From assembly GCF_006345805.1 (NCBI RefSeq), contig NC_043006.1, positions 5,580,001-5,644,000 on the forward strand: a stretch of DNA of 64,000 bases, in the 5' to 3' direction. The position numbers were made by a program, and so were the translations under genes. This document shows positions 8,139-33,932 of this stretch, one piece after another (position 1 is the stretch's first letter; each line of letters begins with the position of its first letter). Source of the DNA: Octopus sinensis (Eukaryota). The notes below the pieces were generated by a model that saw only the letters and a list, made by a program, of their open reading frames with translations, was not told the origin of the DNA and searched no databases.

Positions 8139-8711
8139 ATTAATGATACGAGGGTAAAATTAATTAATTAATCAATTAATTAATAATTTTACCAAGTAGA
8201 TCGGTACGTTACAATAACCTTTATAGGTAAAATTATACAAATATTCTATAATTATAAACATAATTATAATTAGGAGTCGGCTAATTGGTTCAACACATAC
8301 CGAATTTAGAAATAGAAGTTAAAAATCCCTTTTCTACTACCGTAAGAATCTCCCAGGCAGTAACACACTTTTTTATGTAGGCAAATAGAAAAACAATGAA
8401 TCAACACGACTCCGATTAGCCACAGACGCGTTTCGAGATTAAAGTGTTTAATTACTTATTTATCATCATCAGTGTAGCATTTCCAATATAAAATTTGAAA
8501 GTGCCTAGGGTTAAATATGCACACGATCGAGCGACATCGTGCAACGCATATCCAACCAACACTTCCAAACTTTACATAACCGAATGAGAATACATATCTA
8601 TCCCTTGTAACCACAGGTATGTTACCAGCAGTACCGCAGAAAACTGCAGTCTTCGATCAGGGAGTAAATTATAATTACAAATTAATAATAAAAGGGTCTA
8701 TTTATGACAGT

Positions 8712-9102
8712 TACTCTTTACTCTTTTACTTGTTTCAGTCATTTTACTGTGGCCATGCTGGAGCACCGCCTTTAGCCGAGCAAATCGACTCCAGGACTTA
8801 TTCTTATTCTATCGGTCTATTTTGCCGAACCGCTAAGTTACGGGGACGTAAATACACCAGCATCGGTTGTCATATGTTTGGGGGGGACAACTACAGACAC
8901 ACAAACACACACACACATATATATATATATACAAAATATACGACGGGCTTCTTTCAGTTTCCGTCTACCAAATCCACTCACAAGGCTTTGGTCGGCCCGA
9001 GGATATAGTAGAAGACACTTGCCCAAGGTGCCACGCAGTGGGACTGAACCCGGAACCATGTGGTTGGTAAGCAAGCTACTTACCACACAGCCACTCCTGT
9101 GC
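8712..9102 (-). mobile_element. Family A tRNA-derived SINE, full length
   Basis: Minus strand: GGAGTGGCTGTGTGGTAAG...GGTTCAGTCCC head, internal (TA)/(TG) tract, 3' end GCATGGCCACAGTAAAATGACTGAAACAAGTAAAAGAGTAAAAGAG. Confidence 0.9.
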
Positions 9103-9984
9103 CTACCAGTTATTACCAAGTTTTATATAACTTTTCTACTATGGGTTCTAAGATGACTACACAGAACTACTTGGTTTTCGAAATTGTATAATGACTAACT
9201 GTGGTGAACGAAATTTGTTCGCTGACCTAATCAGAAGAGACTGCACATTCGTGCAACCACTCAAAATAGATTTTCAAACCGGCGGTGGATGTGCAGACCT
9301 TTGTACATAAAGGGCAATAGTGTTACAGGAGGCCTTCGGAACTACATGCATATTAATGGTGTGCAATATGTTCTCAATAATGAATGTTAATATTCAGAAC
9401 CAGCTTTTGCTTGAAGCATCAGGAAATCCTGAGGGCCACTACTAAAAACTCCTTTGTCATAAAATAATTGTTTCTCAAGCCTGAAATGTGGGCTCTAACA
9501 ATACCATTCCAACTCACTTCATATTCAATAAAGCGACTTTTATCTTGAGGCAGACCAGTCTTTCCAGCATTCCTCTTTCAAGTCTCAATGATTTCCTGCT
9601 AATGTCTTCAGCATTTCGTGGAAAGCTTCAAGTCTTTGTCTGACAAGAGCCATTTCTTGATTATTTCAAATAATCTTTCTTCACGGCTTTTTTTACCTGC
9701 ATTTATTATTGGTAGAATAAAAGTGTTAAAAGCGAAATGAACTTGTAGAGGCGCCGTTGCATTTTTGCCAAAAATCTATATTTACTTAAACATTCTTGAG
9801 AGTTTACGCTCAGAAAATTTCATAAAATGAGACATTTTGAAATCTCAATGAAATATTTCAGCTTTAATACGGTCGCCATATCAGTAGATTTTTCCAACTA
9901 TTGGGTTCCAGGCTCATAGAGAATTTTTGAACGAAAATAATACAATCAATTGCATCAACACAAGTAAAAATATATAAATATTTC

Positions 9985-10212
9985 TTTATTGCCCACAAGG
10001 GGCTAAACATAGAAAGGACAAACAAGGACAGACAAAGGGAAAAAGTCGATTACATTGACCCCAGTGCGTAACTGGTACTTAATTTATTGACCCCGAAAGG
10101 ATGAAAGGTAAAGTCGACCTCAACGGAATTTGAACTCAGAACCTAACGGCAGACGAAATATGGCTACGCATTTCGCACGGCGTGCTACCGTTTCTGCCAG
10201 GTCGCCGCCTTC
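9985..10212 (-). mobile_element. Family B SINE (duplicated at ~18948-19180)
   Basis: Reverse complement of the family B head/body (GACCCCAGTGCGTAACTGGTACTTAATTT...GAATTTGAACTC). Confidence 0.85.
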
Positions 10213-10280
10213 ATGATTATATTAATAAAATCTATCTTCGTCGCAAGTAGACTTTGAACTCAGAATGAGACTGACACTCT

Positions 10281-10470
10281 GTATATATGCTTAGCTAAAA
10301 TTTTGAACAATGGCAATTTAAAACTGGCACTATGTATATATGCTTTGCTAAAATTTAGAACAATGGCAGTTTAAAACTGGCACTATGTATATATGCTTAG
10401 CTAAAATTTTGAACAATGGCAATTTAAAACTGGCACTATGTATATATGCTTTGCTAAAATTTTGAACAAA
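10281..10470. repeat. 53-bp tandem repeat (~3.6 units) upstream of the copy A promoter
   Basis: GTATATATGCTT(A/T)GCTAAAATTT...AAAACTGGCACTAT starts at 10281, 10334, 10387 and 10440; copy B has only ~1.5 units. Confidence 0.9.
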
Positions 10471-10760
10471 GCAGTATCGTAAAATACTAACTCAGTATTT
10501 TCTCCGTTACATTGACATGAATTGATTTTGTGGTGAGAGCTTTTCATATCGAAAATAATAATGTAAGCAATTACATTTTTCAGGAGTCAAATTTTGACAT
10601 TGCCCTCCCTCCCCAGGATAGTGTCCTTTAGCTCCGTCTTTGTCACCCTTGTCCCGAACATTCAAGATACTATACATTAACCCTTCTTTTGTTATTCCTG
10701 TCCCGCCTCTTTCAGATATACGTTAGGCGCTTTGTCCGCCATTTTATGCCTGAAATCAGC

Positions 10761-10790
10761 TATATAAGTGAGTAAGTCCGCTTATCAGTC
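10761..10790 (+). promoter_or_regulatory. TATA box + initiator, predicted core promoter of precursor gene copy A
   Basis: TATATAAG at 10761; TCAGTC Inr at 10785-10790 puts the +1 A at 10787, 26 nt from the TATA start; ~540 nt upstream of the signal-peptide ATG. Confidence 0.7.
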
Positions 10791-10859
10791 AGACTGTAAA
10801 GTGTCGAAATTTTACTTCAATTCTCGAACCTTCCATTTCGCCGATTTTCTTCAGACAAG
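10787..10859 (+). other. Putative non-coding first exon (5' UTR); possible 20-nt micro-exon at 11117-11136
   Basis: Donor-like AAG|GTAGAA at 10860; acceptor TTTCTTGTATTTTCAG| at 11116 with G|GTTAGT at 11137; all retained in copy B. Exon usage is unverified. Confidence 0.4.
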
Positions 10860-11322
10860 GTAGAAAAGTTGTTTTCTCTATTTCCAGATCATAGTTTTCC
10901 ACTTCAGCAATGTTTTCTACTGTTATTCTGAAGGTTGCCTCGCATTTCTATCATTATAATGAATACTTGTCTTTATATGTTGCACTTCAATTTTTACATC
11001 TATTGCATAAGGTGGGATGTCTTCGTGAAAGAAGCATTTACACTACAAAATATTCTAAAATAGCATTCGCTCCGTTTTAGCAATCGTGTCACTGAGCTCA
11101 TTTCTTGTATTTTCAGCTATAGATTCGACAGCCTCGGTTAGTAACCTGTTAAAGAATTTTCTTTCTAATAATATTGTCAAGTTGTAAAAATAAATTGCTA
11201 ATCGAAATACATGAACATTTTCTACCGTCTATTCATTATATATTGGCCCTAAATGCATGATCATACAGTTCAAAAGTAATTCCCTTTGTCTATAGAAGTA
11301 TATTTCTTGATTGCAGGTAAAG

Positions 11323-11368
11323 ATGCAGAAGTATTTGATTCTAGCCTGCTGCTTCCTCATTTTCAATG
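11323..11368 (+). CDS. Secreted peptide precursor copy A, coding exon 1 (signal peptide MQKYLILACCFLIFN + phase-1 G)
   Basis: Acceptor TTTCTTGATTGCAG| at 11316; ATG 11323; basic n-region and hydrophobic core; perfect donor G|GTGAGT at 11369; phase matches the 14081 acceptor; identical in copy B. Confidence 0.88.
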
Positions 11369-11447
11369 GTGAGTTAAGATCTTTATCCAAATATGATGAA
11401 AATTCATTCTTTAATATTTTTCTCGTTAGATTAGCACATATATAATA

Positions 11448-13050
11448 CTAGCATTATGACCCGTCGATGTCGGGTCATAGTGCTGGTGCATGTATATATG
11501 TGTATATATATACGTGTACATATTACATGTACCTCTATATATATACATCTACACATGAAATACAAAATACAAAGTTATATCTATATATCGCTAGTGATAA
11601 CGATACTCAAAATATATAAGAGACTGGAAATGTAGGCCCGTCTCTTGCAATTTTAATCAATTGTATCTTGTCCTCCCTCTTGTATAGAAGTGTGGCTACA
11701 ATCCAGCCTACCTCTACTTCTGGGGGAACATTTTAAATTTTTTTCCGGGACGTCCTACGTCTCAGATATAAACGTAAAAATAAAATATTTCCACTTTGCA
11801 AGGTTCGAGTCGAGTACTCCCTTGCACGCTCCGTTGACTCTAACCTTGCTTCTATCGTGGCGAATTTACCGCCCTTGGTTAGATATCTTTCATAGTTACA
11901 CCAAGACACTTTACGATGGTGCTTTCCTCCAGGTGTTCAAATATTTTTTTTCTCTACATTGTATACTTTATAGACAATAGTCTTTTCTTTAATTTTTTTT
12001 TATATTTCGTTTGATGGTGTTTTCCTAGGTTCACCGACTCTGTCGATGATCGATCCGAAATAGGTTTGTATTTCTTCCATTTTAATTTTAATGAGTTTGG
12101 ACTTTCTTCTATCGAAGGCATTTTAACAAAAATGCTTCCGTATAAACGGTGAAAATATTGTCAATTTCCCCAAACAGGGACACAATTCAATTTTTAAGCA
12201 ATAACCAAAGTTCCTTCTCCCAAAGGGGGAGGGTTACGGTTTACAATTATTTAAAAAATACAACGCAACAACGTTTCCCTTACGAGGAACCAACAAACGT
12301 GATAACAATAGTTAAACAGTAATAATAATAACAACAAACCTTACGGTGAATCAAAAGGCAGTACGCAGTTGAAGCTATAGTCATTTATGCGTAAGAAATA
12401 AACCAACAGCAGTACTCAGTAGAAACGGCTGTTCGAGAAAACAGACATTACATACAGCCAAACTTCATATAGATACTTAATGCTAAGCTAATTAGCAGAT
12501 AATCTAATGTAAAAGCCGTGGTAAATGGTGTGTGCTCAGCTCCATCTGGACTATTCCATTTCTGCACACTAATTTTATTTTTAATTTATTTCCATTCATG
12601 TGAAACCACTTATTCAAGTTCGAGTCATTGATGCAATTTTATACCAATTGCTATTTTTACTTTTAATTGTTATGTTACGATTTAATTTAGTTTGATTTTA
12701 ATTATTACTTACTACATATCATTCAATTGTCATTATTATCTCTAATTTTTATTGTTAAAGTGAAAGTATCTTTATATATATATAAAACTGAGAATGTGTC
12801 TGTCTGTCTGTTTCCCTAAAACTTGAGAACTACACAACCAATTTCATTCAAATTTTACACATGACTTACTTAGGGTCCATGTAGTTTCATGGGCAGAAAA
12901 ATGTTCAACTTCTTGTCTAGAGAGAGCCCATAGCAATATCATATCTTCTCCACTATTTCAGTATTACGTGTTAAAAGTGAAACAAAAATATTTCTCTATT
13001 TTATGTCAAATGCTATGATATTGCTGTGGGCTCGCCCTAGGCAAAAAGTT
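11448..13050 (-). mobile_element. Non-autonomous Helitron in the intron of copy A, 5' end locally inverted
   Basis: 3' signature on minus strand: hairpin ATGACCCG-n7-CGGGTCAT then CTAG|T at 11448. The 5' part (TCTTTATATATATAAAACTGAGAATG) appears flipped at ~12770-13010 relative to copy B. Confidence 0.7.
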
Positions 13051-13404
13051 TTTAGAATAATTGGAACAAGGCTTTTCACTTCAGCTTCCTCTATACATCC
13101 TTCACAATTTACATCCATCCTGCTTAATTAGTAAGGTTTGCTGGCTGTCAACCCAGTTTCAGAAAGTGTAAATATTGAGGAATATGTTAGTTCCCAGATA
13201 CGAACGATAACCTAATGTTAATATTGCACACTGAAAGATTTCAGGTAAAACACTACAACTATTATACTACACTCATTAAGCGCTGAGGTAGGCCTCATTG
13301 TCTCAATTCAAAACTGGGTAGACTTACGTATTTAATGGTCACAAACTCTCATAACGGTGCTGTTGATGAGACGCGAACAATAAATTTGCCATCTAGCATT
13401 CTTT

Positions 13405-13865
13405 TATTCTTCTATTTGTTTCAGTCATTTGACTGCAGCCATGCTGGAGCACAACCTTTTAGTCGAAGAAATCGACTTATTCTTTGTAAGCCTGGTATTT
13501 ATTCTGTCGTGTTTCTTTGCCGAACCGCTATGTAATTGGGACGTAAACACATCAACATCGGTTGTCAAGCGATGGTGTGTGTGTGTTGGGGGCACAAACA
13601 CACACACACAAACACACACACACAAACACAAACACACGCACACAAACACACACACACAAACACACTCATATATATAAGGAAGGTCGTATATATATATATA
13701 TATATACGACATTCTTTCGTTTTCCGTCTTCCAAATCCATTGACAAGGCTTTGGTCGGCCGGGGGCTATAGTAGAAGACATTTTCTCAAGGTGACACGCA
13801 GTGGGTTTGAACCCGGAACCATGTGGTTGGGAATCAAGATTCTTACAACACAGCCCCAACCGTGC
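13405..13865 (-). mobile_element. Family A SINE, intronic (duplicated at ~25885-26345)
   Basis: Full family A head/body/tail on the minus strand. Confidence 0.9.
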
Positions 13866-14080
13866 CATATCAAATTTTATGAAAATAGATTTTTCACGGT
13901 GGGATTGATTAGGAATTCAGAATTGCTTGGGAATTTTTTATGACTAAAATTTCAAGAGACTTGTAGTGGTATTGTATAATCCATTATTCTATTTATTTAC
14001 AGTGCGTAAAATATATAAATTTTAATCTTCCTATCCATTTTATATATCTTAACTGGTATTTATTATTTTTTTTCTTATAG

Positions 14081-14751
14081 CAGGAAGATCTCAAGCAAGG
14101 TCGATCAAATATGACAGGATTCGCGATTATATGAGTACGATGCCGCGGGATATAATAGGCAAAAATATGGCGATGATACCCGATTATCCGACTATGCCAG
14201 CAGAAGACATCTATAAAAAGTCAATGATGGATATAATAGGCAAGAATATGGCCATGATACCCGATTATGCGACCATACCTGCAGATGCCTACAATAAAAG
14301 ATCAATTAAAAGCAAGAAAAGTGCGATGATAGCCGATTATGCGACAATACCTGCAGATGCTTACAATAAAAGATCAATGAAAGGCAAGAAAAGTGCGATG
14401 ATAGCCGATTATGCGACTATACCTGCAGATGCTTCCATTATGCAATCAAGGCCAATGGCGGACCATTATATCCAGGAAATACGCATGGGAATGAAAGACA
14501 TTGACTTTCGTCCAGTCACAGCCATTCCTCCAAACATTGCCTTACGTCCAATTGAGACGATAGGCAAGAAAAGTGCGATAGCCGATTATGCGGCTATACC
14601 TGCAGAAGACATCTATAAAAAATCAATGATAGATAAGATAGGCAAGAATATGGCCATGATACCCGATTATGCGGCTATACCTGCAGATGCCTACAGTATG
14701 AGATCAATGATGAACTACATGCCGACAGAATATATCTATGAAATAGAATGA
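14081..14751 (+). CDS. Secreted multi-copy peptide precursor copy A, coding exon 2 (repeat peptides with KK/KR/GK sites)
   Basis: Polypyrimidine tract + TAG|CAG| acceptor at 14080/14083; frame open upstream of the annotated Met (GRSQARSIKYDRIRDY-M14131); six DYxxxPA(D/E) repeats; stop TGA 14749-14751. Non-random, non-TE protein. Confidence 0.9.
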
Positions 14752-15247
14752 AAACGAATGCCATTCACAATTCGTCCAAAATATTTAGATAATGCCAGCA
14801 GAAAAATCTCAAATCCTGATGATAATGTCTATTGATACGAGGCATGCATCATTGTGAATGATACTCCATGTCTACTATCAGTGCATCTTCCTATAGATTT
14901 CCGTCAATAACAACAGATTAGTGCATACAATATAACAAACAAATCATTTGTTCAAAAATAACCAAAATAAACTTTTTCTTTTTTATTAATTTGCTAAAAT
15001 ATCTCTGCATAGCAATCAAGTATTTTTTCAACCTTGTTGGTTTCTCACATTATCACAAAATCTACAAATGATGAGAAGAGAAGGAAATAGTGTATGTTTC
15101 TTCCAACCAAGATTAAATATCTGATTACCTGGAGATTATATCAATATATATCAATATGCTAACAAAAATCTATTCAAACATTTGATTTTATGTGATTTCT
15201 TGAAATATTCTTATACAAAAATCTGTTTATAGTGGATATATTTGATT

Positions 15248-15253
15248 AATAAA
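15248..15253 (+). terminator. Candidate polyadenylation signal of copy A (copy B equivalent 27728-27733)
   Basis: AATAAA ~500 nt after the stop, followed by T/GT-rich sequence; conserved in both copies. AT-rich context makes chance hits common. Confidence 0.4.
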
Positions 15254-15647
15254 ACACTTCTTTAATGCGCTTTTAATGTCGAGTTGTTCTTCATTTGCCT
15301 GTTTGTACTTTTTATGAAGTCAAATAATATTAGAATGGTTTAGCTATCATGTTCAGGGGTACACATTCTTAAGATCTATATCCCGACATCGCATTCGTCA
15401 AAAAGGTGTCTTTGTAAACAATATCTGAAATATCATAAAATTGCTGTTGACGCGATATATTTTAGTAAGGGACTTGCTTCCTAAGAAAAAAGACATCTCT
15501 CAGCTTATTAAGAAACGATTTCTCAAATTATGGCAGTATTAGAAATGAGTATTATTTTCTAGCAGGAGCAGACGAAATGAGTTCTGGTGATAGACTTGAT
15601 GTAATTGTATCACCTGCAACGATACCTCACCAAAAAATATGTAGAGT

Positions 15648-16065
15648 TACTCTCTTTTACTCTTTACTCTTTTACTTGTTTCAGTCATTTGACTGCGGCC
15701 ATGCTGGAGCACCGCCTTTAGTCGAGCAAATTGACCCCGGGACTTATTCTTTGTAAGCCCAGTACTTATTCATCGGTCTCTTTTGCCGAACCGCTAAGTG
15801 ACGGGGACATAAACACACCAGCATCGGTTGTCAAGCAATGCTAGGGGACAAACACAGACACAAACACACACACTTATATATATATATATATATACATATA
15901 TACGATAGGCTTCTTTCAGTTTCCGTCTACCAAATCCACTCACAAGGCATTGGTCGGCCCGGGGCTATAGCAGAAGACACTTGCCCAAGATGCCACGCAG
16001 TGGGACTGAAACTGGAACCATGTGGTTGGTTAGCAAACTACTTACCACACAGCCACTCCTGCGCC
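15648..16065 (-). mobile_element. Family A SINE (duplicated at ~28128-28522, which has a small internal deletion)
   Basis: Full family A structure on the minus strand. Confidence 0.9.
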
Positions 16066-16689
16066 TAGTGTTGAGTCAAGTTTCAAAATCTTTATTATTG
16101 TTTGTAATGATGATGCTGATACTTCTTGTTATAGACAAGAAGCAACTGCATTAACTTTCTTTATTATCTTATGGTATTCATGGAGGTATCAGGAATCTTT
16201 TTTAAACCATTTGTTTTCTATTGAATTAATATAGTAAGAAGACAAACGGGACAACGAAACATAACCCTCTCAAAGAGTACATAATTGAAATTCTGCCTCG
16301 TTTTCTTTTAGCATAAAGCTCCTATATTTATAAAAGGGACAATAATAAAGCGGGTAAGAAGGAGTGAGTTACAATTTCCACGCCATTCTCTCTGGGAAGT
16401 AACTACCACTAGTAACAAAATAACAGCCCCAACAGATCTCTTCATGAGCTTAATTCATGATTTAGGTAGAATGCAGTTAGCATTACTTTGCTAGAAAGAA
16501 AAAAAAAACAATCATCGAAATAATTCTACATAATTTTATGTAATTTCTTTAAAATTTTTAAAATCTTTTTTTTTCAGAGCTATATATATTAGTAAATATA
16601 AGTAAAATTAATGAACACATTTGAAGAAACAGTTTCTTACAATTAATTACTTGAGTGGGGTTTTCATTCCGATCTGCATCTCATGTGTA

Positions 16690-16945
16690 CCTCACCTCCC
16701 AAAACGCTGACTTTCCCTTCAATTGTCCAAAGACCACAATTCATCTCATGCCACCCCATACACACCAGAATGAATATCCCCTTCAGGCTAGCAAAAAGGA
16801 TTTGTACTACTTTTCTAATGCAAGCACCAGGGACACACGATTACATGAACTAAAGGATACACTCATCACCAAGAACCACCCACCTTCACTAATTGACATA
16901 TGCCTTCAACGTGTCCTACAACTCAACATCCACGAACTGGACGAT
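16690..16945 (+). pseudogene. Penelope-like retroelement RT C-terminal fragment, frameshifted (duplicated at ~29160-29415)
   Basis: Joined frames read SCHPIHTRMNIPFRLAKRICT...RDTRLHELKDTLITKNHPPSLID, matching the PLE thumb pattern SxHPxHxKxxIP...RIC...RL.EL...LI. Confidence 0.75.
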
Positions 16946-17569
16946 GTTACTGTTTTTTAACTCCAAGAGACATCGTTTCTAGCTGGCTATACGACATAAT
17001 ATTTTGTCCTTATATTCTAACCGGGCAATAACCCAGAAACTAGTCCACAGATGTTGTTTTGCGCTAGATGGGAGTACTGAACTCCCTGGTCCAAAATATA
17101 AGGACACAGGTTTTGTGTCGTATAGCCAGCTAGAAACGATGTTTCTTGAGGCTAAACAACAGTAACCTCGCCCCTTCCAGGACAGCCATATTATGTTGTC
17201 AAATAGCCTTTACTTTAAAGAACTTTACTAAATGTCTCTCTCTGAGGGCTTTAGAAATAATAACATTTATATATCTCTTATCTTATGATAAAAGGCAGAT
17301 TTTCTCTGCCTCCCAATCCGTTCGTTTTTTATACAATTCTACAATATAGAATTTCTTCAAGTGGAATTTACCTATCATTTTTACAAGTAGATTCCATCGG
17401 GTCGTGGCATGTAAATTTTTTTCAATTTCACCCCCAATTAAGCAAAAATTCGAGAAAAGTAAATATTTTACGATTTCCCTCTTTCATTTCAAATGCTTCA
17501 CTCCTACCATTACCACTACACTTTCTCCTCCTTTCTCTTTGCAAGTGTGCAAAACTTAAAGTGAAAGTA

Positions 17570-18290
17570 TTTATATAAAAGGGATGAGCAATTAATACTG
17601 GTCATCCTTTTTGCTAGAAGATCCGCTGTGGTCTCATATGCTACACCACTGGTTTTCAGTTCATATTAATCAAATTAATATTCAATTTTTCACCCTTATT
17701 ATGTGTGTGTGTATTAGCAATTCGTATAAAATTGCATCTATGACTTGAACTTGAATAAGTGGTTTCACATAAATGGGGATACATTAAAAAGGTTTGTTGT
17801 TATTATTATTACTGTTTAACTATTGTTATCACGTTTGTTGGTTCCTCGTCAGGGAAACGTTGTTGTGTTGCATTTGTTAAATAATTGTAAACCGTAACCC
17901 TCTCCCTTTGGGAGAAGGAGCTTTAGTTATTGTTTAAAAATTGAATTGTGTCCCTGTTTGGGGAAATTGACAATATTTTCACAGTTTATACGGAAGCATT
18001 TTTGTTAAAATGCCTTCGATAGAAGAAAGTCCAAAAATGAATTTCGCTGCAGCCGTACACTTCTATACAAGAGGGAGGACAAGATCCAATTGATCGAAAT
18101 TGCAAGAGACGGGCCTACAATTCCAGTCTGTTATATATTTTGAGTATTGTTATCACTAGCGATATCAAGATATAACTTTCTATTTTGTATTTTATGTGTA
18201 GATGTATATATATATATAGATGTACATGTAATATGTACATATATATATATATATACACATATATACATGCATAATATATCTACCCATGCA
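17570..18290 (+). mobile_element. Non-autonomous Helitron, same family as the intronic ones, opposite orientation
   Basis: 17710-18290 is the reverse complement (with deletions) of ~11500-12650; 17590-17700 matches 7730-7830 inverted. Confidence 0.7.
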
Positions 18291-18383: not shown

Positions 18384-18657
18384 ATGGGCGGTAGTGCCTT
18401 GCCGGTCTATGGCCTACCTTCAACAAACCGGGAAGGCACATACACTCTGTCTTCACATTTGCTGCGTGAGACATGTTTTAATGTTGACGAGCTTGCCGAG
18501 TACGTAACCGACAATGAGCCAAAGCTCTTTCCAGAACAGAAGTTCGCTTACAACTCCGTTGTTAATTCAGTCCGGGCCAAAGCTGGGGAGATATTTTTCC
18601 TGGACGCTCCTGGAACACTGGGAAAACTTTTCTCAACAAATTAATATTGGCTGAGAT
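18384..18657 (+). pseudogene. Helitron RepHel PIF1-type helicase fragment
   Basis: MGG..LPVYGLP...LLRET...NEPKL.PEQK.AYN.V..SV....G.IFFLDAPG; a frameshift restores (G)TGKTFLNKLILAEI, the Walker A motif of Helitron helicases. Confidence 0.85.
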
Positions 18658-19610
18658 ACCTGTATTTATTATTGGTAGAATAAAAGTGTTAAAAAGCGAA
18701 ATGAACTTGTACAGGCGCCGGTGCATTTTTGCCAAAAATCTATATTTACCTTTATCACATTCTTGAGAGTTTACGCTCAGGAAATTTCATAAGATAACAC
18801 ATTTTGAAATCTCAATGAAATATTTCAGATTTAATACGGTCGCCATATCAGTAGATTTTTCCAACTATTGGTTTCCAGGCTCATAGAGAATTTTTGAACG
18901 AAAATAATACAATCAATTGCATCAACACAAGTAAAAAAAAATATATATTTCTTTACTACCCACAAGGGGCTAAACATAGAGAGGACAAACAAGGACGGAC
19001 AAAGGGATTATGCCGATTACATTGACCCCAGTGCGTAACTGGTACTTAATTTATCGACCCCGAAAGGATGAAAGGTAATGTCGACCTCGGCGGAATTTGA
19101 ACTCAGAACGTAACGGCAGACGAAATATGGCTACGTATTTCGCACGGAGTGCTAACGTTTCTGCCAGGTCGCCGCCTTCATCAATATATTAATAAAATCT
19201 ATCTTCGTCGCTAGTAGACTTTGAACTCAGAATGAGACTGACACTATGTACACATGGTTATCTAAAATTTTGAACAATGGCAGTTTAAAACTGGCACTAT
19301 GTAAATATACTTTGCTAATGGCAGTATTATATAATACTGACTCAGTATTTTATCCGTTACATTGACATGAATTGATTTTGTGGTGAGAGCTTTTCATATC
19401 GAAAATAATAATGTAAGCAATTACATTTTTCAGGAGTCAAATTTTGACATTGCCCACCCTCCCCAGGATAGTGTCCATTAGCTCCGTCTTTGTCACCCTT
19501 GTCCCGAACATTCAAGATACTATACATTAATCCTTCTTTTGTTATTCCTGTTCCGCCTCTTTGAGATATACGTTAGGCGCTTTGTCCGCCATTTTATGCC
19601 TGAAATCATC

Positions 19611-19640
19611 TATATAAGTGAGTAAGTCCGCTTATCGGTC
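19611..19640 (+). promoter_or_regulatory. Core promoter of copy B (TATA intact, Inr TCAGTC changed to TCGGTC)
   Basis: TATATAAG at 19611; G at 19637 where copy A has the predicted +1 A. Confidence 0.65.
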
Positions 19641-20169
19641 AGACTGTAAAGTGTCGAAATTTGACTTCAATTCTCGAACCTTCCATTTCGCCGATTTTCT
19701 TCAGACAAGGTAGAAAAGTTGTTTTCTCTATTTCCAGATCATAGTTTTCCACTTCAGCAAAGTTTTCCTACTGTTATTCTGAAGATTGCCACACATTTCT
19801 AACATTATAATGAATACTTGTCTTTATATGTTGCACTTCAATTTTTATATCTATTGCATAAGGTGGGATGTCTTCGTGAAAGAAGCATTTACACTACAAA
19901 ATATTCTAAAATAGCATTCGCTCCGTTTTAGCAATCGTGTCACTGAGCTCATTTCTTGTATTTTCAGCTATAGATTCAACAGCCTCGGTTAGTAACCTGC
20001 TAAAGAATTTTCTTTCTAATAATATAAGTTGTAAAAATAAATTGCTAATCGAAATACATGAACATTTTCTAACGTCTATTCATTATATATTGGCCCTAAA
20101 TGCATGATCATACAGTTCAAAAGTAATTCCCTTTGTCTATAGACGTACATTTCTTGATTGCAGGTAAAG

Positions 20170-20215
20170 ATGCAGAAGTATTTGATTCTAGCCTGCTGCT
20201 TCCTCATTTTCAATG
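20170..20215 (+). CDS. Secreted peptide precursor copy B, coding exon 1 (signal peptide)
   Basis: Identical to 11323-11368; acceptor TTGCAG| at 20163; donor G|GTGAGT at 20216. Confidence 0.87.
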
Positions 20216-20376
20216 GTGAGTTAAGATCTTTATCCAAATATGATGAAAATTCATTCTTTAATATTTTTCTCGTTAGATTAGCACATATATAATACTAGCA
20301 TTATGACCCGTCGTTGTCGGTCATAGTGCTAGTGCATGTACATATGTGTATATATATACGTGTACATATTACATGT

Positions 20377-23300
20377 TAGTTAGTTAGTTAATTTGGCTCA
20401 AAAGCAAATAGCAAGGCCATGTAGGGGGACATAGAGTTAAGTACAGGGTGGTGTTCATGTAAAGAGTTCCGGCCACTTGAGGTCCAGGGAGGCTTTGAAC
20501 AAAGCGGTCGTCGGCATCTTCACCATCTCGTCTGGCAGCTTGTTCCACGGATCCGCAACCCGGACGGAGAAAGCTCCTCTCCTTCGATTGAGATGAAATC
20601 GTCGCAGGTAGAGCTTTTCGGAATGACCCCGCAGCCGACGCTCTGGAGCAGGAGTGAAGAACAGCTCTTTCGAGAGGTTACACTTTCCGCTTATGATGTT
20701 GTGGGCGAGAATGAATCACCACGGCGGCGGCGTTTTTCAAGAGAATAAAGGTCGAGCATCCTCAGCCTTTCTTCGTAGGACAAAGTTTTGAGACCATGAA
20801 CCATGCGGGTAGCCAGCTTCTGGACTCTTTCGAGATGCTGTATGTCTTTGAGGAGATAAGGAGAAGAGGCTTGAATCCCATACTCCAATATGGGTCTCAC
20901 CAGCGTGACATAGAGTGGTAGGAATATGGCTGCTGTGAGCATTCCGAATGACCGTCGAATCAAGAACAGAATTCCGCGTGCTTTGTTGGCAGCATGGACG
21001 CACTGGGCTGAAGGCGAAAAGGAGGAATCCACCAAGATACCCAGGTCCTTTACCTGATCGGTCCTCTCCAGCAGCAGACGACCCGGCTCGAAATCAAGTT
21101 GAGTTGCAGGAGTAGAGCCGACAGGCAGATGACAGCACTTTGACACGTTCAGACACAGGTCCCAATCGTTAGACCACTTCCAAATTTGGTGGAGGCATCG
21201 ACGAAGATCCTCTATATCACCGCGAGGAGCGACCAGTTTGATATCGTCGGCAAATAGAAGGGTGTGTTGCGTGAGGTCGTCGGGCAAGTCATTTATGAAG
21301 ACTAAGAACAACAAGGGCCCAAGCACTGAACCTTGAGGCACGCCACTGATCGCACTGGAGACGTCGGACCGCGAACCATTAACTTGGACTTGGAAGGAGC
21401 GATCTGAGAGGAAGGCACCAACCCATCGTACAATATCCGGATGGAAACTATATGCTTGAAGCTTGACAAGTAATAGGCGGTGGTTTACCGAGTCAAAAGC
21501 TTTGGCAAAGTCCAATAAAACGATGTCAACAGCATCACTATCACCGAGGATGCGCGTCACCAATTCTTCCATTACTAGTAAGTTGGTCAAGCATGATCTC
21601 TTCGGCACGAAGCCGTGTTGGGAATCAGAGATAGAGGCTGTGTTTAGGAGGTGGAGCATCATACTTTTCTTAAGGATGGTTTCGAACATCTTGCTGATTA
21701 TTGATGTAAGGGAAACCGGTCGGTAGTTAAGCGGGTCTTCGCGGCTCCCTTTCTTGAAAATTGGGCAGATTATCGCTGTTCTCCAGTCTGCAGGTATAAC
21801 ACCCGTCGCCAATGACATATTGAATAGTCGTGTTAAGGGCTCGCAGATGACCGGAGCCAACGCTTTGATAACCCGTGGGTGTATGCCGTCAGGGCCGTGA
21901 CCCTTGTTGACATCGAGGCCTTGAATAACACGTTTGACTTCGTCCCGCGTGATGACCAATCGAAGCATTGGAGGTACCGATCTAACAAATGGAGGGGGTT
22001 CACGACCATCATCTTGCTTGAAAATAGTTGAAAAATCCTCGGCAAATAATTGACTCTGTTGATAAGGGTCCTCAATCGATACGCCTGTTGAGTCTACCAA
22101 CGTTGTAATATGGTTGTTCAAGCGGAAATTCCGCTGGACATGGGCAAAGAAGGTTTTTGGATTGCTACTGGCATTTGCCGCGATTTTGTATTCATAACTG
22201 CAGCGTTCTTTCTTTTCAATTTTCACGGCTCGGTCTCGTTGAGTTTTGTACACCTCAAAAGCTGCAGTCGAATCCAGATTTTTGAATTCAGCCCAAGCAA
22301 TATCTCTGAGTCGACGTTCTCGTTTAACCTTCTTCGTCACCCAGGGCTTGTGTTTCTTCCTCTTGGGAAGCCCAACGGGAACTGCCTGGTCAGTCAAACA
22401 GATTACATATGCTTTGAGGGATGACCATAGTTCGTCAACTGAGGACAACGTCATCAGAGATCGCCAGTCCAGAAGCGCGGAAGCCTCGGTTAGAATTTCA
22501 AGATTAATTGCAGAGAAGACTCTACGTGGCAGCGAAGTAGTCGTGGGCGTAGAAAAAGTTGTGTGCATGACGAACTTCAGGACCGCATGATCACTCTTGG
22601 CAAGAGGGGCGCACACAGATACGTCTGACACTGATCTTGGATAGCGGGAGAATACCAGATCTAGCATAGATGGCTGCTGCCCAGACCGATGCCTTGTCGG
22701 ATATTCAACATGTTGCGATAGAAAACAATCTTCAGCCACGTCAAGAAAGGCCTGGCCGAACCGGGAAGATGTTGTACAAATTGATGCGGGCCAATCGATC
22801 GTGGGAGCGTTGAAGTCTCCTAGTACCAAACAGTCATGCGAAGCTGAAACGAATCTTATCGCCTCGAGTAAATGAGCATCGTCCTGGGGGTCGGCAAGAG
22901 GCGGCCTGTAGACAGCCAACACGGGCAGGCAAAACTCAGATAGGCTCAGCTTGCAATAGACGGCATCGAATTTTGTTGTAGGTTGAGCGTTAGTGGGTAG
23001 AATACCGCTGGACGGTTTGTGCTCAGACTTAACATACACAGCAACACCTCCACCTCGCCTTTTTCCTCTGTCACATCTGAAAAGGACGTAGCCCTGCAGG
23101 TGGATTTCTGAGTCCTTTACTGCTGGAGTCAGCCAAGTCTCGGTGATAGCTATCACATCAGGGGAGTCACGTATGGCCAGTGTAAATAGTTCACTGAACT
23201 TTGGGAATAAAGAGCACGAGTTGGTGTAGACGATGTTGAGCTGTGAAGTCTGAGGGGCGGGAGTTGGGGAACAAGCAGAATAAGGGGTATCAGAGATAGC

Positions 23301-23773
23301 ATCGTTGACGGGGGTATCAACTTCACTTCGATTTGCCCTCACATCACTTTCCCTGTCAGCACTACAGCATGGGACCAGAGGTAGGACTTGATTATCTGTC
23401 CATCTTGGATTCGTAAACCCTTCTCTCCCATTTGTTTCCTCATCTTTAGCTCGGATATTAGATTTCTCCGGCGAATTCTCTCTCTTAGTGAGTACTCCTC
23501 GCGAAAACCCATATTGGGGTCCTCCCAGGCATGCGTCTGAGCTCTGTTCAGAAAGACTGAAGCCTCCCGATCGGAGGAAAAGATTACCTTTATTGGCGTG
23601 GTCTAGTATCTGAGGTTGGGTTCGCTTGGAATCTTCCTAGCCGAGCGACCTTATGGACACTGACATTTTCGTTCACAGCGAACAATTCTCCAACTAAAAT
23701 GGAAACAAAATTAATGTCATCTTTTAGGCGGTTTATGCCTGTATCACAGGTGGATTCAGCTTTACCGTAAATT
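20377..23773 (-). mobile_element. CR1-clade non-LTR retrotransposon, 5'-truncated in ORF1, near-intact ORF2
   Basis: (TAAC)n tail; ATGT duplicated at 20373-76 and 23774-77 at a site that is empty in copy A; ORF1 C-terminal remnant (RLG...RPIKVIF...ELKMRKQMGEKGLRI) at ~23345-23773. Confidence 0.92.
20455..23342 (-). pseudogene. LINE ORF2: APE endonuclease + reverse transcriptase, one frameshift near the C-terminus
   Basis: APE motifs (YTN, AITETWL, GDFN, SDH) and RT motifs (GPDGI, YRPVSLTS, QHGF, DFAKAFD, GVPQGSVLGP, FADD) in an 883-aa ORF. A shift near 20715 restores the CR1 tail ...RGHS...FSVRVADPWNKLP...ELFT*. Confidence 0.92.
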
Positions 23774-25431
23774 ATGTACATCTATATATACATCTACACA
23801 TGAAATACAAAATACAAAGTTATATCTATATATCGCTAGTGATAACAATACTCAAAATATATAAGAGACTGGAATTGTAGGCCCGTCTCTTGCAATTTTA
23901 ATCAATTGTATCTTGTCCTCCCTCTTGTATAGAAGTATAGCAACAATCCAGCCTACCTCTACTTCTGGGGGGACATTTTTAATTTTTATCCGGGATGTCC
24001 TACGTCTCAGATATAAAGGTAAAAATAAAATATTTCCACTTTGCAAAGTTCGAGTCGAGTACTCCCTTGCACGCTCGAACCTTGCTTCTATTGTTGTGAA
24101 TTTTCCGCCTCTGATTTGATATCTTTCATAGTCGCACCAAGACACATTTCGATGGTGCTTTCCTCCAGGTGTTCAAATCTTTTTTTTTCTCTACATTGTA
24201 TACTTTATAGACAATAGTCTTTTCTTTAATTTTATTTTTTATTTCGTTTGGTGGTGTTATCCTAGATTCACCGTCTTTGTCGATGATCAATCCGAAGGAG
24301 GTTTGTATTTCTTCCATTTTAATTTTAATGAGTTCGCACCCGCCGACGGTGCAGCGATATTCATTTTTGGACTTTCTTCTATCGACGGCATTTTAACAAA
24401 AATGCTTCCGTATAAACGGTGAAAATATTGTCAATTTCCCCAAACAGGGACACAATTCAATTTTTAAACAATAACCAAAGCTCCTTCTCCCAAAGGGGGA
24501 GGGTTACGGTTTACAATTATTTAACAAATGCAACACAACAACGTTTCCCTTACGAGGAACCAACAAACGTGATAACAATAGTTAAACAGTAATAATAATA
24601 ACAACAAACCTTACGGTGAATCAAAAAGCAGTACGCAGTTGAAACTATAGTCATTTATGCATAAGAAATAAACCAACAGCAGTACTCAGTAGAAACGGCT
24701 GTTCGAGAAAACAGACATTACATACAGCCGAACTTCATATTGATACTTAATGCTAGCTAATTAGCAGATAATCTAATGTAAAAGCCGTGGTAACGGGTAT
24801 GTGCTCAGCTCCATATGGACTGTTCCATTTCTGCACACTAATTTTATTTTTAATTTATTCCCATTCATGTGAAACCACTTATTCAAGTTCGAGTCATTGA
24901 TGCAATTTTATACCAATTGCTTTTTTTTACTTTTAATTGTTATGTTACGATTTAATTTAGTTTGATTTTAATCATTACTTACTACATATAATTCAATTGT
25001 TATTATTATCTCTAATTTTTATTGTTAAAGTGAAAGTATCTGACATAAAATAGAGAAATATTTTTGTTTCACTTTTAACACGTAATACTGAAATAGTGGA
25101 GAAGATATGATATTGCTATGGGCTCGCCCTAGGCAAGAAGTAGAACATCTTTTTTTTGCCCATGAAACTACATGGACCCTAAGTAAAGCATGTGCAAAAT
25201 TTGAAAGAAATTGGTTGTGTAGTTCTCAAGGTTTAGGGAATCATAGTGGAGAAGATATGATATTGCCGTGGGCTTGCCCTAGGCAAAAAGCTGAAAAAAT
25301 TTTAACGATGACACTCCCCGGACCCTAAGTAAAGCATGTGTAAAATTTGATTGCAATTGGTTGCGTAGTTCTCAAGGTTTAGGGAAACACACAGACAGAC
25401 AGATAGACAGAGAGACAAACGGACAGACAGA

Positions 25432-25464
<33 letters not shown>

Positions 25465-26561
25465 TCTCAGTTGTATATATATAGAGATAGTGAAAGTAAG
25501 TGGCGTGTTGAATTATTGCTAGTTATGAAATTCTTAGAATAATTGGAACAAGGCTTTTCACTTCAGCTTCCTCTATACATCCTTCACAATTTACATCCAT
25601 CCTGCTTAATTAGTAAGGTTTGCTGGCTGTCAACCCAGTTTCAGAAAGTGTAAATATTGAGGAATATGTTAGTTCCCAGATACGAACGATAACCTAATGT
25701 TAATATTGCACACTGAAAGATTTCAGGTAAAACACTACAACTATTATACTACACTCATTAAGCGCTGAGGTAGGCCTCATTGTCTCAATTCAAAACTGGG
25801 TAGACTTACGTATTTAATGGTCACAAACTCTCATAACGGTGCTGTTGATGAGACGCGAACAATAAATTTGCCATCTAGCATTCTTTTATTCTTCTATTTG
25901 TTTCAGTCATTTGACTGCAGCCATGCTGGAGCACAACCTTTTAGTCGAAGAAATCGACTTATTCTTTGTAAGCCTGGTATTTATTCTGTCGTGTTTCTTT
26001 GCCGAACCGCTATGTAATTGGGACGTAAACACATCAACATCGGTTGTCAAGCGATGGTGTGTGTGTGTTGGGGGCACAAACACACACACACACAAACACA
26101 CACACAAACACAAACACACGCACACAAACACACACACACAAACACACTCATATATATAAGGAAGGTCGTATATATATATATATATACGACATTCTTTCGT
26201 TTTCCGTCTTCCAAATCCATTGACAAGGCTTTGGTCGGCCGGGGGCTATAGTAGAAGACATTTTCTCAAGGTGACACGCAGTGGGTTTGAACCCGGAACC
26301 ATGTGGTTGGGAATCAAGATTCTTACAACACAGCCCCAACCGTGCCATATCAAATTTTATGAAAATAGATTTTTCACGGTGGGATTGATTAGGAATTCAG
26401 AATTGCTTGGGAATTTTTTATGACTAAAATTTCAAGAGACTTGTAGTGGTATTGTATAATCCATTATTCTATTTATTTACAGTGCGTAAAATATATAAAT
26501 TTTAATCTTCCTATCCATTTTATATATCTTAACTGGTATTTATTATTTTTTTTCTTTATAG

Positions 26562-27232
26562 CAGGAAGATCTCAAGCAAGGTCGATCAAATATGACAGGA
26601 TTCGCGATTATATGAGTACGATGCCGCGGGATATAATAGGCAAAAATATGGCGATGATACCCGATTATCCGACTATGCCAGCAGAAGACATCTATAAAAA
26701 GTCAATGATGGATATAATAGGCAAGAATATGGCCATGATACCCGATTATGCGACCATACCTGCAGATGCCTACAATAAAAGATCAATTAAAAGCAAGAAA
26801 AGTGCGATGATAGCCGATTATGCGACAATACCTGCAGATGCTTACAATAAAAGATCAATGAAAGGCAAGAAAAGTGCGATGATAGCCGATTATGCGACTA
26901 TACCTGCAGATGCTTCCATTATGCAATCAAGGCCAATGGCGGACCATTATATCCAGGAAATACGCATGGGAATGAAAGACATTGACTTTCGTCCAGTCAC
27001 AGCCATTCCTCCAAACATTGCCTTACGTCCAATTGAGACGATAGGCAAGAAAAGTGCGATAGCCGATTATGCGGCTATACCTGCAGAAGACATCTATAAA
27101 AAATCAATGATAGATAAGATAGGCAAGAATATGGCCATGATACCCGATTATGCGGCTATACCTGCAGATGCCTACAGTATGAGATCAATGATGAACTACA
27201 TGCCGACAGAATATATCTATGAAATAGAATGA
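26562..27232 (+). CDS. Secreted multi-copy peptide precursor copy B, coding exon 2
   Basis: Same TAG|CAG| acceptor (26561/26564); ORF-track protein identical to 14131-14751. Confidence 0.9.
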
Positions 27233-28325
27233 AAACGAATGCCATTCACAATTCGTCCAAAAATTTAGATAATGCCAGCAGTAAAATCTCAAGTCCTGAT
27301 GATAATGTCTATTGATACGAGGCATGCATCATTGTGAATGATACTCCATGTCTACTATCAGTGCATCTTCCTATAGATTTCCGTCAATAACAACAGATTA
27401 GTGCATACAATATAACAAACAAATCATTTGTTCAAAAATAACCAAAGTAAGCTTTTTCTTTTTTATTAATTTGCTAAACTATCTCTGCATAGCAATCAAG
27501 TATTTTTTCAACCTTGTTGGTTTCTCACATTATCACAAAATCTACAAATGATGAGAAGAAAAGGAAATAGTGTATGTTTCTTCCAACCAAGATTAAATAT
27601 CTGATTACCTGGAGATTATGTCTATATATATCAATATGCTAACAAAAATCTATTCAAACATTTGATTTTATGAGATTTCTTGAAATATTCTTATACAAAA
27701 ATCTGTTTATAGTGGATATATTTGATTAATAAAACACTTCTTTAATGCGCTTTTAATGTCGAGTTGTTCTTCATTTGCCTGTTTGTACTTTTTATGAAGT
27801 CAAATAATATTAGAATGGTTTAGCTATCATGTTCAGGGGTACACATTCTTAAGATCTATATCCCGACATCGCATTCGTCAAAAAGGTGTCTTTGTAAACA
27901 ATATCTGAAATATCATAAAATTGCTGTTGACGCGATATATTTTAGTAAGGGACTTGCTTCCTAAGAAAAAAGACATCTCTCAGCTTATTAAGAAACGATT
28001 TCTCAAATTATGGCAGTATTAGAAATGAGTATTATTTTCTAGCAGGAGCAGACGAAATGAGTTCTGGTGATAGACTTGATGTAATTGTATCACCTGCAAC
28101 GATACCTCACCAAAAAATATGTAGAGTTACTCTCTTTTACTCTTTACTCTTTTACTTGTTTCAGTCATTTGACTGCGGCCATGCTGGAGCACCGCCTTTA
28201 GTCGAGCAAATAAGCCCAGTACTTATTCATCGGTCTTTTTTGCCGATCCGCAAAGTGACGGGGACATAAACACACCAGCATCGGTTGTCAAGCAATGCTA
28301 GGGGACAAACACAAACACACAAACA

Positions 28326-28357
<32 letters not shown>

Positions 28358-29759
28358 CACGATAGGCTTCTTTCAGTTTCCGTCTACCAAATCCACTCAC
28401 AAGGCATTGGTCGGCCCGGGGCTATAGCAGAAGACACTTGCCCAAGATGCCACGCAGTGGGACTGAACTTGGAACCATGTGGTTGGTTAGCAAACTACTT
28501 ACCACACAGCCACTCCTGCGCCTAGTGTTGAGTCAAGTTTCAAAATCTTTATTATTGTTTGTAATGATGATGCTGTTACTTCTTGTTATAGACAAGAAGC
28601 AACTGCATTAACTTTCTTTATTATCTTATGGTATTCATGGAGGTATCAGGAATCTTTTTTAAACCATTTGTTTTCTATTGAATGAATATAGTAAGAAGAC
28701 AAACGGGACAACGAAACATAACCCTCTCAAAGAGTACATAATTGAAATTCTGCCTCGTTTTCTTTTAGCATAAAGCTCTTATATTTATATAAGGGACAAT
28801 AATAAAGCGGGTAAGAAGGAGTGAGTTATAATTTCCACGCCATTCTCGTTGATAGTTACATCGTCTGGGAAGTAACTACCACTAGTATCAAAATAACAGC
28901 CCCAACAGATCTCTTCATGAGCTTAATTCATGATTTAGGTAGAATGCGGTTAGAAAGAAAAACCAATCATCGAAATAATTCTACATAATTTTATGCGTCA
29001 ACGAGCTAAATATTTTCTTTAAAATATTTAAAATCTATTTTTTTTCAAAGCTATATATATTAGTAAATATAAGTAAAATTAATGAACACATTTGAAGAAA
29101 CAGTTTCTTACAATTAATTACTTGAGTGGGGTTTTCATTCCGATCTGCATCTCATGTGTACCTCACCTCCCAAAACGCTGACTTTCCCTTCAATTGTCCA
29201 AAGACCACCGTTCATCTCATGCCACCCCATACACACCAGAATGAATATCCCCTTCAGGCTAGCAAAAAGGATTTGTACTACTTTTCTAATGCAAGCACCA
29301 GGGACACACTATTACATGAACTAAAGGATACACTCATCACCAAGAACCACCCACCTTCACTAATTGACATATGCCTTCAACGTGCGCTACAACTCAACAT
29401 CCACGAACTGGACGATGTTACTGTTTTTTAACTCCAAGAAACATCGTTTCTAGCTGGCTATACGACATAATATTTGTGTCCTTATATTCTAACCGGGCAA
29501 TAACCCAGAAACTAGTCCACAAATGTTGTTTTCTGCTAGATGGGAGTACTGGACTCCCTGTTCCAAAATATAAGGACACAGGTTTTGTGTCGTATAGCCA
29601 GCTAGAAACGATGTTTCTTGAGGCTAAACAACCGTAACCTCGCCCCTTCCAGGACAGCCATATTATGTTGTCAAATAGCCTTCACTTTAAAGAACTTTAC
29701 TTACTAAGTGTCTCTCTCTGAGAGATTTAGAAATAATAACATTTATATATGTATATATA

Positions 29760-33284: not shown

Positions 33285-33695
33285 CTTTTTCTTTTACTTG
33301 TTTCAGTCATTTGACTGCGGCCATGCTGGAGCACCGCCTTTAGTCGAGCAAATCGACCCTGAGACTTATTCTTTGTAAGCCTTATTCTTATTTGTGAGTA
33401 CTTATTCTATCGGTCTCATTTTGCCGATCCGCTAAGTGACGGGGACGTAAACACACCAGCATCGGTTGCTAGGGGGACAAACACAGACACACAAACACAC
33501 ACGCATACATATATATATATATACATATATACGACAGGCTTCTTTCAGTTTCCGTCTACCAAATCCACTCACAAGGCATTGGTCGGCCCGGGGCTATAGC
33601 AGTAGACACTTGCCCAAGGTGCCACGCAGTGGGACTGAACCCGGAACCATGTGGTTGGTTAGCAAGCGACTTACCACACAGCCACTCCTGCGCCT
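33285..33695 (-). mobile_element. Family A SINE, left member of an inverted pair
   Basis: Full family A on the minus strand; head ends at ~33694. Confidence 0.9.
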
Positions 33696-33733
33696 ACTCA
33701 TTCTTTAAAAAAAAATAAAATTATAACAATATA

Positions 33734-33901: not shown

Positions 33902-33932
<31 letters not shown>

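Follow-up and report, generated by a model that had tools for sequence, protein, structure and literature searches.

Which kind of product is encoded by a small two-exon locus found in a 64,000-nt window of the Octopus sinensis genome (chromosome record CM016868.1, bases 5580001–5644000; the window is the whole stretch of DNA analysed, and positions refer to it), and what becomes of this product after translation? Our analysis revealed that the locus is a genuine two-exon protein-coding gene, which is present twice in the window. Judged from its sequence and those of its relatives in two other octopus species, it probably encodes a secreted precursor that would be cut by convertases into several peptides acting extracellularly. 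A prohormone-like layout had been proposed for copy 1 in a first-pass annotation made from the DNA letters and their open reading frames (ORFs), and the comparison of three species described below supports and strengthens this reading.

The gene structure of copy 1 starts with a 46-nt coding exon (ATGCAGAAGTATTTGATTCTAGCCTGCTGCTTCCTCATTTTCAATG, ATG at 11323, end ...TTCAATG) and a G|GTGAGT donor (GTGAGT from 11369 on), followed by an intron carrying a SINE-like/microsatellite repeat at about 13398–13855. The acceptor at 14081 reads ttttcttatag|CAGGAAG and has an in-frame NAGNAG alternative at 14084. The joined coding sequence (CDS) comprises 717 nt with a TGA at 14749–14751 and yields 238 aa (237 aa with acceptor 14084). 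Polypyrimidine tract and TATAG acceptor are kept in O. sinensis, O. vulgaris, and O. bimaculoides; since the O. bimaculoides acceptor reads TATAG|CAC and lacks the second AG, it is the acceptor at 14081 that is conserved. Four sequences of three species (the two copies of O. sinensis and one each of O. vulgaris and O. bimaculoides) share exon 1 and its GTGAGT donor with 100% identity, while the non-coding DNA of O. bimaculoides near exon 1 is only 87–93% identical to that of O. sinensis. Upstream lies a candidate 5' exon equivalent to the one with which the O. vulgaris isoform CAI9728454 begins; copy 2 has a counterpart at 19596–19617, and both show a GTGAGT donor. The junctions of this isoform, which carries an 11-residue N-terminal extension, were not reconstructable from canonical splice sites, and the 5' exon is possibly non-coding.

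The phase-1 join of the two exons in the first-pass annotation was correct to the base. ORF listing alone gives only a 206-aa piece starting with MSTMP, and the gene had been described as hidden and expected to be annotated as a non-secreted protein. This expectation was wrong: the 238-aa product, including its signal peptide, is identical over its full length (100%) to RefSeq XP_029641963.1/XP_029641964.1 "uncharacterized protein LOC115216621/LOC115216622" (UniRef100_A0A6P7SUP4), the two accessions being due to the two gene copies. The annotated gene ranges are 11323–14751, which matches the coordinates of copy 1 exactly, and 20170–27232 for copy 2. The signal exon is used by the NCBI, O. vulgaris, and O. 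bimaculoides models, and the same junction appears in three annotations, which come from the NCBI pipeline (two species) and an EVM/PASA pipeline (O. vulgaris). Two isoforms are annotated in O. vulgaris, and as alternative isoforms in that pipeline derive from PASA transcript assemblies, we infer transcript support for the gene. Since the gene is already in the databases, the value of the present analysis lies in interpretation and not in gene discovery. Apart from the existing annotation, the identical second copy and a coding tandem array of 72-nt period had also been missed before.

In regard to the N-terminus, the product is signal-peptide-like as initially described, with M-Q-K (K3), an 11-residue hydrophobic core (YLILACCFLIF, maximum 9-residue Kyte-Doolittle mean of 3.33), and a polar c-region (NAGRSQA). 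Candidate cleavage sites are A16 and A21, and S-Q-A sits at −3 to −1 of a putative site. The region after the signal peptide is confirmed to be free of Cys; it reveals no second hydrophobic segment (maximum 19-residue Kyte-Doolittle mean of 0.53) and is rich in Ile, Ala, Met, Lys, Asp, Tyr, and Pro (Y 7.8%, K 9.2%). AlphaFold2 predicted a single helix, the N-terminal one (residues 3–22), with a mean pLDDT of 40 and a pTM of 0.13, a low confidence that is weak evidence of disorder since the alignment held only three sequences. A fold search with so poor a model would be meaningless.

Two types of elements, which alternate, could be distinguished in the mature part. Type A elements are acidic, Tyr-containing peptides of 15–17 residues built on the core I-P-(A/P)-D-A-Y-N; all six repeats listed in the first-pass annotation were located in exon 2 of copy 1 (Table 1). 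Type B elements are short spacers with a final Gly that precedes a basic residue, namely ..RDII-G-K, SMMDII-G-K, SMK-G-KK, ..IETI-G-KK, and SMIDKI-G-K. The 72-nt array that makes the first four repeats has its match in copy 2 at 26629–26915. PRDIIGK of the N-terminal propeptide is kept in O. vulgaris, and the central linker is related to a YIQ...IPPNIPIRP segment within the O. vulgaris repeat unit.

The strongest hints on processing came from comparison of these elements between species, with six peptide copies in O. sinensis and four each in O. vulgaris and O. bimaculoides. The site before every core peptide is G-K, G-RR, or KK, and most copies are then followed by KR or KK. O. bimaculoides displays the most canonical arrangement, with RR-SDIANIPADAYN-KR three times, alternating with SSEINGIDM-G-RR, and O. 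vulgaris has ..PRDII-G-K-NIAKIPDYATIPPDAYN-KR four times. Gly stands directly before K/R in five of six cases in O. sinensis (shuffle p=0.0004), in 4/6 in O. vulgaris (p=0.004), and in 4/8 in O. bimaculoides (p=0.02), and O. bimaculoides has an excess of dibasic pairs (9 against a shuffled mean of 3.94, p=0.006), though all these p-values overstate the evidence because repeat copies are not independent. The agreement across species in differing spacer contexts is the stronger argument.

Several observations weigh against such processing. For dibasic pairs, no significant enrichment was seen in O. sinensis (7 versus 4.29, p=0.11) or in O. vulgaris (7 versus 4.95, p=0.20), and the dependence among repeat copies weakens all shuffle tests. 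Five of the seven dibasic sites of O. sinensis are KK and four further sites are monobasic G-K, which convertases use less reliably than KR or RR. The earlier description of repeats lying between KR/KK sites held insofar as basic sites do separate the repeats, but two of the six are not followed by a dibasic site. With the less reliable KK and G-K sites, and with two type A copies missing a downstream pair, the actual peptides may be longer or less numerous than predicted. The −3/−1 rule fits A21|R22 in O. sinensis but gives a less clear picture for O. bimaculoides. Gene, protein, and UniProt identifiers as well as peptide motifs led to no relevant paper in the searchable literature. As far as their possibly incomplete supplement texts go, there was also no trace of the peptide motif in a study of O. 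vulgaris posterior-salivary-gland peptides or in a survey of molluscan prohormones (PMC6425005), of the accession in an O. vulgaris skin-mucus proteome, or of any match in a paralarval brain cell atlas and an O. sinensis gonad transcriptome.

If the gene encodes a processed precursor, the 238-aa product would enter the secretory pathway, and the signal peptide would be removed near A16 or A21. As the precursor has neither a predicted fold nor cysteines, we propose that subtilisin-like proprotein convertases cut at KR/KK/RR and monobasic G-K sites, a carboxypeptidase would trim the basic residues, and peptidylglycine alpha-amidating enzymes would convert an exposed C-terminal Gly to an amide. 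Up to six acidic, Tyr-containing peptides of 15–17 residues, e.g., SAMIADYATIPADAYN, would be released in O. sinensis, with the consensus x-(A/M)-(M/I)-I-(P/A)-D-Y-(A/P)-(A/T)-(I/M)-P-A-(D/E)-(A/D)-(Y/I)-(N/Y), in which Tyr next to Asp (D-Y motifs) is possibly sulfated. Short amidated co-products would be SMMDII-NH2, SMIDKI-NH2, ...RDII-NH2, and ...IETI-NH2. These peptides may act outside the cell either as neuro/endocrine messengers or in an exocrine manner, e.g., as pheromone or in saliva or a reproductive or defensive secretion.

Comparison of exon 2 between the species showed how strongly the repeat array turns over. O. sinensis has amplified a unit of 72 nt, O. vulgaris one of 234 nt that contains a nested 18-nt unit, and O. 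bimaculoides one of 78 nt; all three lengths are multiples of 3 and in frame, and the exon-2 frame is open over 222, 288, and 170 codons, respectively. The core I-P-(A/P)-D-A-Y-N-K-R-S is kept in all three species, with K-R after the core at nearly all copies. In O. vulgaris, exon 2 (13808–14676 of the locus designated L004) holds about four 234-nt units, and a further, frame-shifted unit follows the stop codon; with their 150 and 161 aa, the O. vulgaris models seem to fall short of the full gene, the 150-aa model skipping part of the array. Between O. sinensis and O. vulgaris, 20 of 132 bases (15%) differ in the first 44 codons of exon 2, compared to 28/400 (7%) in the adjoining intron (Fisher p=0.008) and 28 of 598 aligned bases (4.7%) in the 3' flank (Fisher p of 1e-4); around exon 1, 8/346 bases differ. 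The pN was 0.163 and the pS 0.108, an excess that is not significant (p=0.57), and the rest of the repeat array was not alignable by blastn. The locus illustrates in compact form how a coding minisatellite retains a peptide core and its processing sites while the remainder of the array is replaced from one sister species to the next. Typical features of pheromone, reproductive, defensive, and salivary secretions are an unchanging signal peptide, a short core under conservation, rapid turnover elsewhere, and recent duplication, though spacers of true neuropeptide precursors are also fast-evolving. The fast array turnover beside a conserved signal peptide and core makes us lean slightly, as far as sequence comparison can suggest, towards a fast-evolving extracellular secretion or cue over a neuro/endocrine messenger.

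Turnover of this kind also bears on a different fate of the product, which we consider unlikely, namely that it is secreted and left intact as a disordered repetitive polypeptide of mucus, egg coat, cement, adhesive, or matrix, with Lys, Tyr, and Asp serving cross-linking or ion binding and with incidental basic pairs. Repeat number and unit shift fast between sister species in many structural repeat proteins as well, and the repetitive mature part with no predicted fold, its Tyr and Lys content, and the lack of significant dibasic enrichment in O. sinensis and O. vulgaris would all suit such a protein. Against it stand the near-confinement of Gly to the position before basic residues in three species despite differing spacers, the near-invariant K-R after the core in all species, and the textbook RR...KR of O. 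bimaculoides. A length of 238 aa is small for a structural protein, and the absence of the accession from the available supplement text of the skin-mucus proteome is a weak negative in the same direction.

Even less probable seems a host-defence or prey-directed salivary peptide precursor, in which the conserved signal peptide and the acidic repeats would be pro-pieces and the short variable spacers the active products, an arrangement known from amphibian skin peptides and gastropod venom peptides. While the contrast between an invariant signal exon and 15% divergence at the start of exon 2, the higher pN than pS, the lineage-restricted distribution, and the recent tandem duplication are compatible with it, the most conserved element is the acidic peptide and not the spacers, which are very short and do not form amphipathic cationic helices. 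The excess of pN over pS lacks significance, and the supplement text of the salivary-gland study, possibly incomplete, does not contain the motif.

The last of the alternatives with some support concerns the reality of the gene and is tied to its second copy, which lies 8.8 kb downstream and is identical to copy 1 at all 717 coding bases. Both copies lie in collinear blocks, between which (17789–18271) intron fragments have been rearranged and in part inverted; at the corresponding place, O. vulgaris and O. bimaculoides each carry one copy. In the region surrounding exon 2, 17 of about 2600 positions (0.65%) distinguish the two O. sinensis copies, so that the identity of exon 2 needs no special explanation; gene conversion is unnecessary, as only about four differences would be expected there. 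The duplication is either recent and O. sinensis-specific or consists of two haplotypes assembled in tandem. No Ns were found in the window, which together with the rearranged fragments at the junction favours a real tandem duplication over a haplotype artefact, without being proof. Most of the extra length of the copy 2 intron is explained by an 883-aa retrotransposon ORF, which is missing from copy 1 and may therefore be a young insertion.

The reality of the duplication is separate from that of the gene. It would be conceivable that the locus is non-functional, i.e., a minisatellite transcript or over-predicted model with a chance open frame, copy 2 being a misassembled haplotype. Tandem repeats in the window do yield long meaningless ORFs (e.g., 1134 aa), the copies differ so little near exon 2, and otherwise mainly by the retrotransposon insertion, that they could be two alleles, both other species have one copy, and the protein collections hold no transcript-derived protein, though octopus runs are probably not covered by them. 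We regard this as improbable, since each of the three species keeps the frame open with a repeat unit of its own, whose length is always a multiple of 3, the signal exon, splice sites, and intron phase are conserved, and the junction recurs in three annotations; in regard to misassembly, the copies are joined by rearranged sequence and not by a gap. A transposable-element protein, finally, is rejected, since no reverse transcriptase, endonuclease, transposase, or gag domain was found and the window holds only two tandem-duplicate copies; the transposable-element ORFs present in it lie apart from the coding sequence of the gene.

In order to place the putative precursor, we searched for relatives. 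A word-indexed search of 5.8 billion protein clusters revealed only two related proteins beyond O. sinensis, one from O. vulgaris (CAI9728454/CAI9728455, 161 and 150 aa) and one from O. bimaculoides (XP_052826669.1, 186 aa). Run without word filter against 1.84 billion representatives, a profile built from all three proteins found no further relative; four weak matches to polyubiquitin chains (E=1e-7 to 6e-4) were rejected since they match through repetition only. The Pfam scan gave no family at threshold, and the matches to DUF4908 (14 bits, where 25 are required) and to a nitrous-oxide reductase repeat were due to chance and below threshold. No transcript-derived or read-assembly copy was found in the protein collections, in which the 206-aa genomic ORF was also missing, so that octopus runs are probably not covered. 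Six-frame cross-species comparison for finding exons was uninformative because the species are about 85–97% identical even in non-coding DNA. As far as these databases of annotated proteins show, the gene family seems to be confined to the genus Octopus, and on present data it is undescribed in the literature; the earlier statement that the product could not be assigned to a known family stands, as it matches no described peptide family or Pfam domain.

Known secretory precursors offer several points of comparison. Generic multi-copy precursors such as molluscan FMRFamide, myomodulin, and buccalin share with the octopus gene a signal peptide on its own small exon, the lack of a fold and of Cys, a short peptide in tandem between KR/KK/RR, a Gly-basic amidation signal, and a species-variable copy number. 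In contrast, the octopus motif ..DYATIPADAYN corresponds to no catalogued molluscan family, the predominant peptide of the repeats is acidic and predicted not to be amidated, and the precursor is confined to a single genus with a repeat unit that changes between sister species, while classical neuropeptide families are described as conserved across the phylum (PMC6425005). Otherwise, the nearest analogues in size, peptide number, and paralogy are SP-alpha and SP-beta of Sepia officinalis, cephalopod-restricted secreted precursors of 248–252 aa (Enault et al. 2012, PMC3484142). They yield five or six peptides of 2.3–6.9 kDa with multiple putative disulfide bonds, some of them C-terminally amidated; SP alpha and alpha' are 98.4% identical, the homology class is given as 'unknown', and expression in the oviduct gland is proven with products detected (PMC3484142). 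The octopus protein, in comparison, has no Cys after the signal peptide, and neither word-indexed nor profile searches revealed similarity to SP-alpha/beta.

Orcokinin/pedal-peptide (FLGamide) precursors resemble the octopus protein in having multiple copies of acidic peptides of about 12–17 residues, many of them not amidated and with amidated ones alongside. The Sepia So-orcokinin B motif F-D-S/T-L-G-G-G..., as in VFDTLGGGHVPYY and FDSLGGGSFLG-amide (PMC9410093), has no equivalent in the octopus protein, in that F-D-x-(I/L)-G-G-G does not occur in any repeat and no search indicated homology. An invariant signal peptide, faster divergence than in the flanks, and recent tandem duplication may be compared to amphibian skin and cone-snail venom precursors. 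In those, a conserved signal/pro region precedes hypervariable mature peptides, whereas the conserved core of the octopus protein lies inside the mature region and recurs several times in the same precursor; no relationship emerged at the sequence level.

Although cephalopods serve as models for complex behaviour, little is known of the signalling molecules specific to their lineages, and surveys mainly recover peptide families shared among molluscs. For receptor, behaviour, muscle, and chromatophore work, a precursor restricted to one genus and cleanly laid out like a prohormone supplies concrete synthetic peptides, though its practical benefit will be modest before expression and peptides have been demonstrated. 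A bolder proposal, which we put forward only tentatively, is that the gene founds an Octopus-specific signalling family of acidic, possibly Tyr-sulfated ..IPADAYN peptides and short ..DII/..IDM-amides, the array being re-amplified per species as might be expected for a species-recognition, reproductive, or chemotactile cue, and that a head-to-head copper monooxygenase gene might share its regulation.

This neighbour is best seen in O. vulgaris, where about 2 kb separate the precursor gene from its nearest upstream neighbour (L004 1–8037, minus strand), the two being oriented head-to-head. The neighbour encodes 338 aa with both domains of copper type II ascorbate-dependent monooxygenases (PF01082 and PF03712), with no DOMON listed. 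PF01082 and PF03712 form the domain set of the peptide-amidating enzyme PHM. In O. bimaculoides, the neighbour model (314 aa; L003 1–21935, minus strand) spans the whole locus with the precursor gene inside. The corresponding position in the window is upstream of about 8470, and motif search, ORF listing, and reading of minus-strand frames recognised no copper monooxygenase coding exons there or elsewhere in the window. The location of an amidating-type enzyme beside a precursor rich in Gly-basic signals may be coincidence or reflect shared regulation.

Table 1. Features of the two gene copies, predicted peptide elements of copy 1, and repeats in the window
Feature	Position	Strand	Remarks
Candidate 5' exon, copy 1	10746–10767	+	counterpart of first exon of O. 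vulgaris isoform CAI9728454; GTGAGT donor
Coding exon 1, copy 1	11323–11368	+	MQKYLILACCFLIFN and first base of codon 16; signal-peptide exon
Phase-1 intron, copy 1	11369–14080	+	GT...AG, 2712 nt
Coding exon 2, copy 1	14081–14751	+	residues 16–238 and stop; entire secreted repetitive body
N-terminal propeptide	14098–14160	+	RSIKYDRIRDYMSTMPRDII-G, then K; predicted end ...DII-amide
Coding tandem array	14148–14434	+	72-nt (24-codon) period, 3.8 copies, 84–91% matches; makes repeats 1–4
Acidic repeat 1	14164–14214	+	NMAMIPDYPTMPAEDIY; GK before, KK after
Spacer SMMDII-G	14221–14241	+	KK before, K after; predicted SMMDII-amide
Acidic repeat 2	14245–14295	+	NMAMIPDYATIPADAYN; GK before, KR after
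Acidic repeat 3	14320–14367	+	SAMIADYATIPADAYN; KK before, KR after
Acidic repeat 4	14392–14436	+	SAMIADYATIPADAS; GKK before, no basic site after, continues into central linker
Central non-repeated linker	14434–14565	+	SIMQSRPMADHYIQEIRMGMKDIDFRPVTAIPPNIALRPIETI-G, then KK
Acidic repeat 5	14572–14616	+	SAIADYAAIPAEDIY; GKK before, KK after
Spacer SMIDKI-G	14623–14643	+	KK before, K after; predicted SMIDKI-amide
Acidic repeat 6	14647–14697	+	NMAMIPDYAAIPADAYS; GK before, MR then C-terminal tail SMMNYMPTEYIYEIE after
Coding exon 1, copy 2	20170–20215	+	identical to copy 1
Coding exon 2, copy 2	26562–27232	+	671 nt, zero differences from copy 1; same 238-aa product
Duplicated block, copy 1	9694–17274	.	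collinear with 18657–29750
Duplicated block, copy 2	18657–29750	.	collinear with 9694–17274
Non-LTR retrotransposon ORF in copy 2 intron	20691–23342	-	883 aa, uninterrupted; endonuclease/exonuclease/phosphatase and RVT_1
SINE-like repeat copies	8711–9105, 13398–13855, 15647–16067, 28137–28524, 33275–33696, 33732–34150, 44599–45001, 47550–48048, 54941–55363		

Apart from the gene, the window is rich in repeats. A SINE-like dispersed repeat of about 400 nt with a TG/CA microsatellite is present at least nine times, in either orientation, and the introns of both gene copies contain one each; Rfam and tRNA scans of the window gave no match. A 24-nt minisatellite at 60313–63733 (142.6 copies, 93% matches) is open in several frames by accident and so yields ORFs without meaning, the longest of 1134 aa. 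Two copies of a 1.7-kb segment (34714–36458 and 38770–40510, 97% identical) are arranged around fragments of another reverse-transcriptase element (RVT_1 and zf-RVT matches), with ORFs at 34749–35048, 35190–36308, 37739–38749, and 39767–40360; further unannotated ORFs lie at 36720–37517 and 41888–43213. A 184-nt unit forms short tandem arrays at 1988–2429 (2.4 copies) and 48355–48877 (2.8 copies, 99% identical) and is dispersed as single units at 9979–10211, 18946–19178, 45777–45999, and 50206–50440. Finally, a purine-rich array of AGAGTAAAAG with a 10-nt period and about 55 copies (44969–45494) adjoins one of the SINE-like copies.

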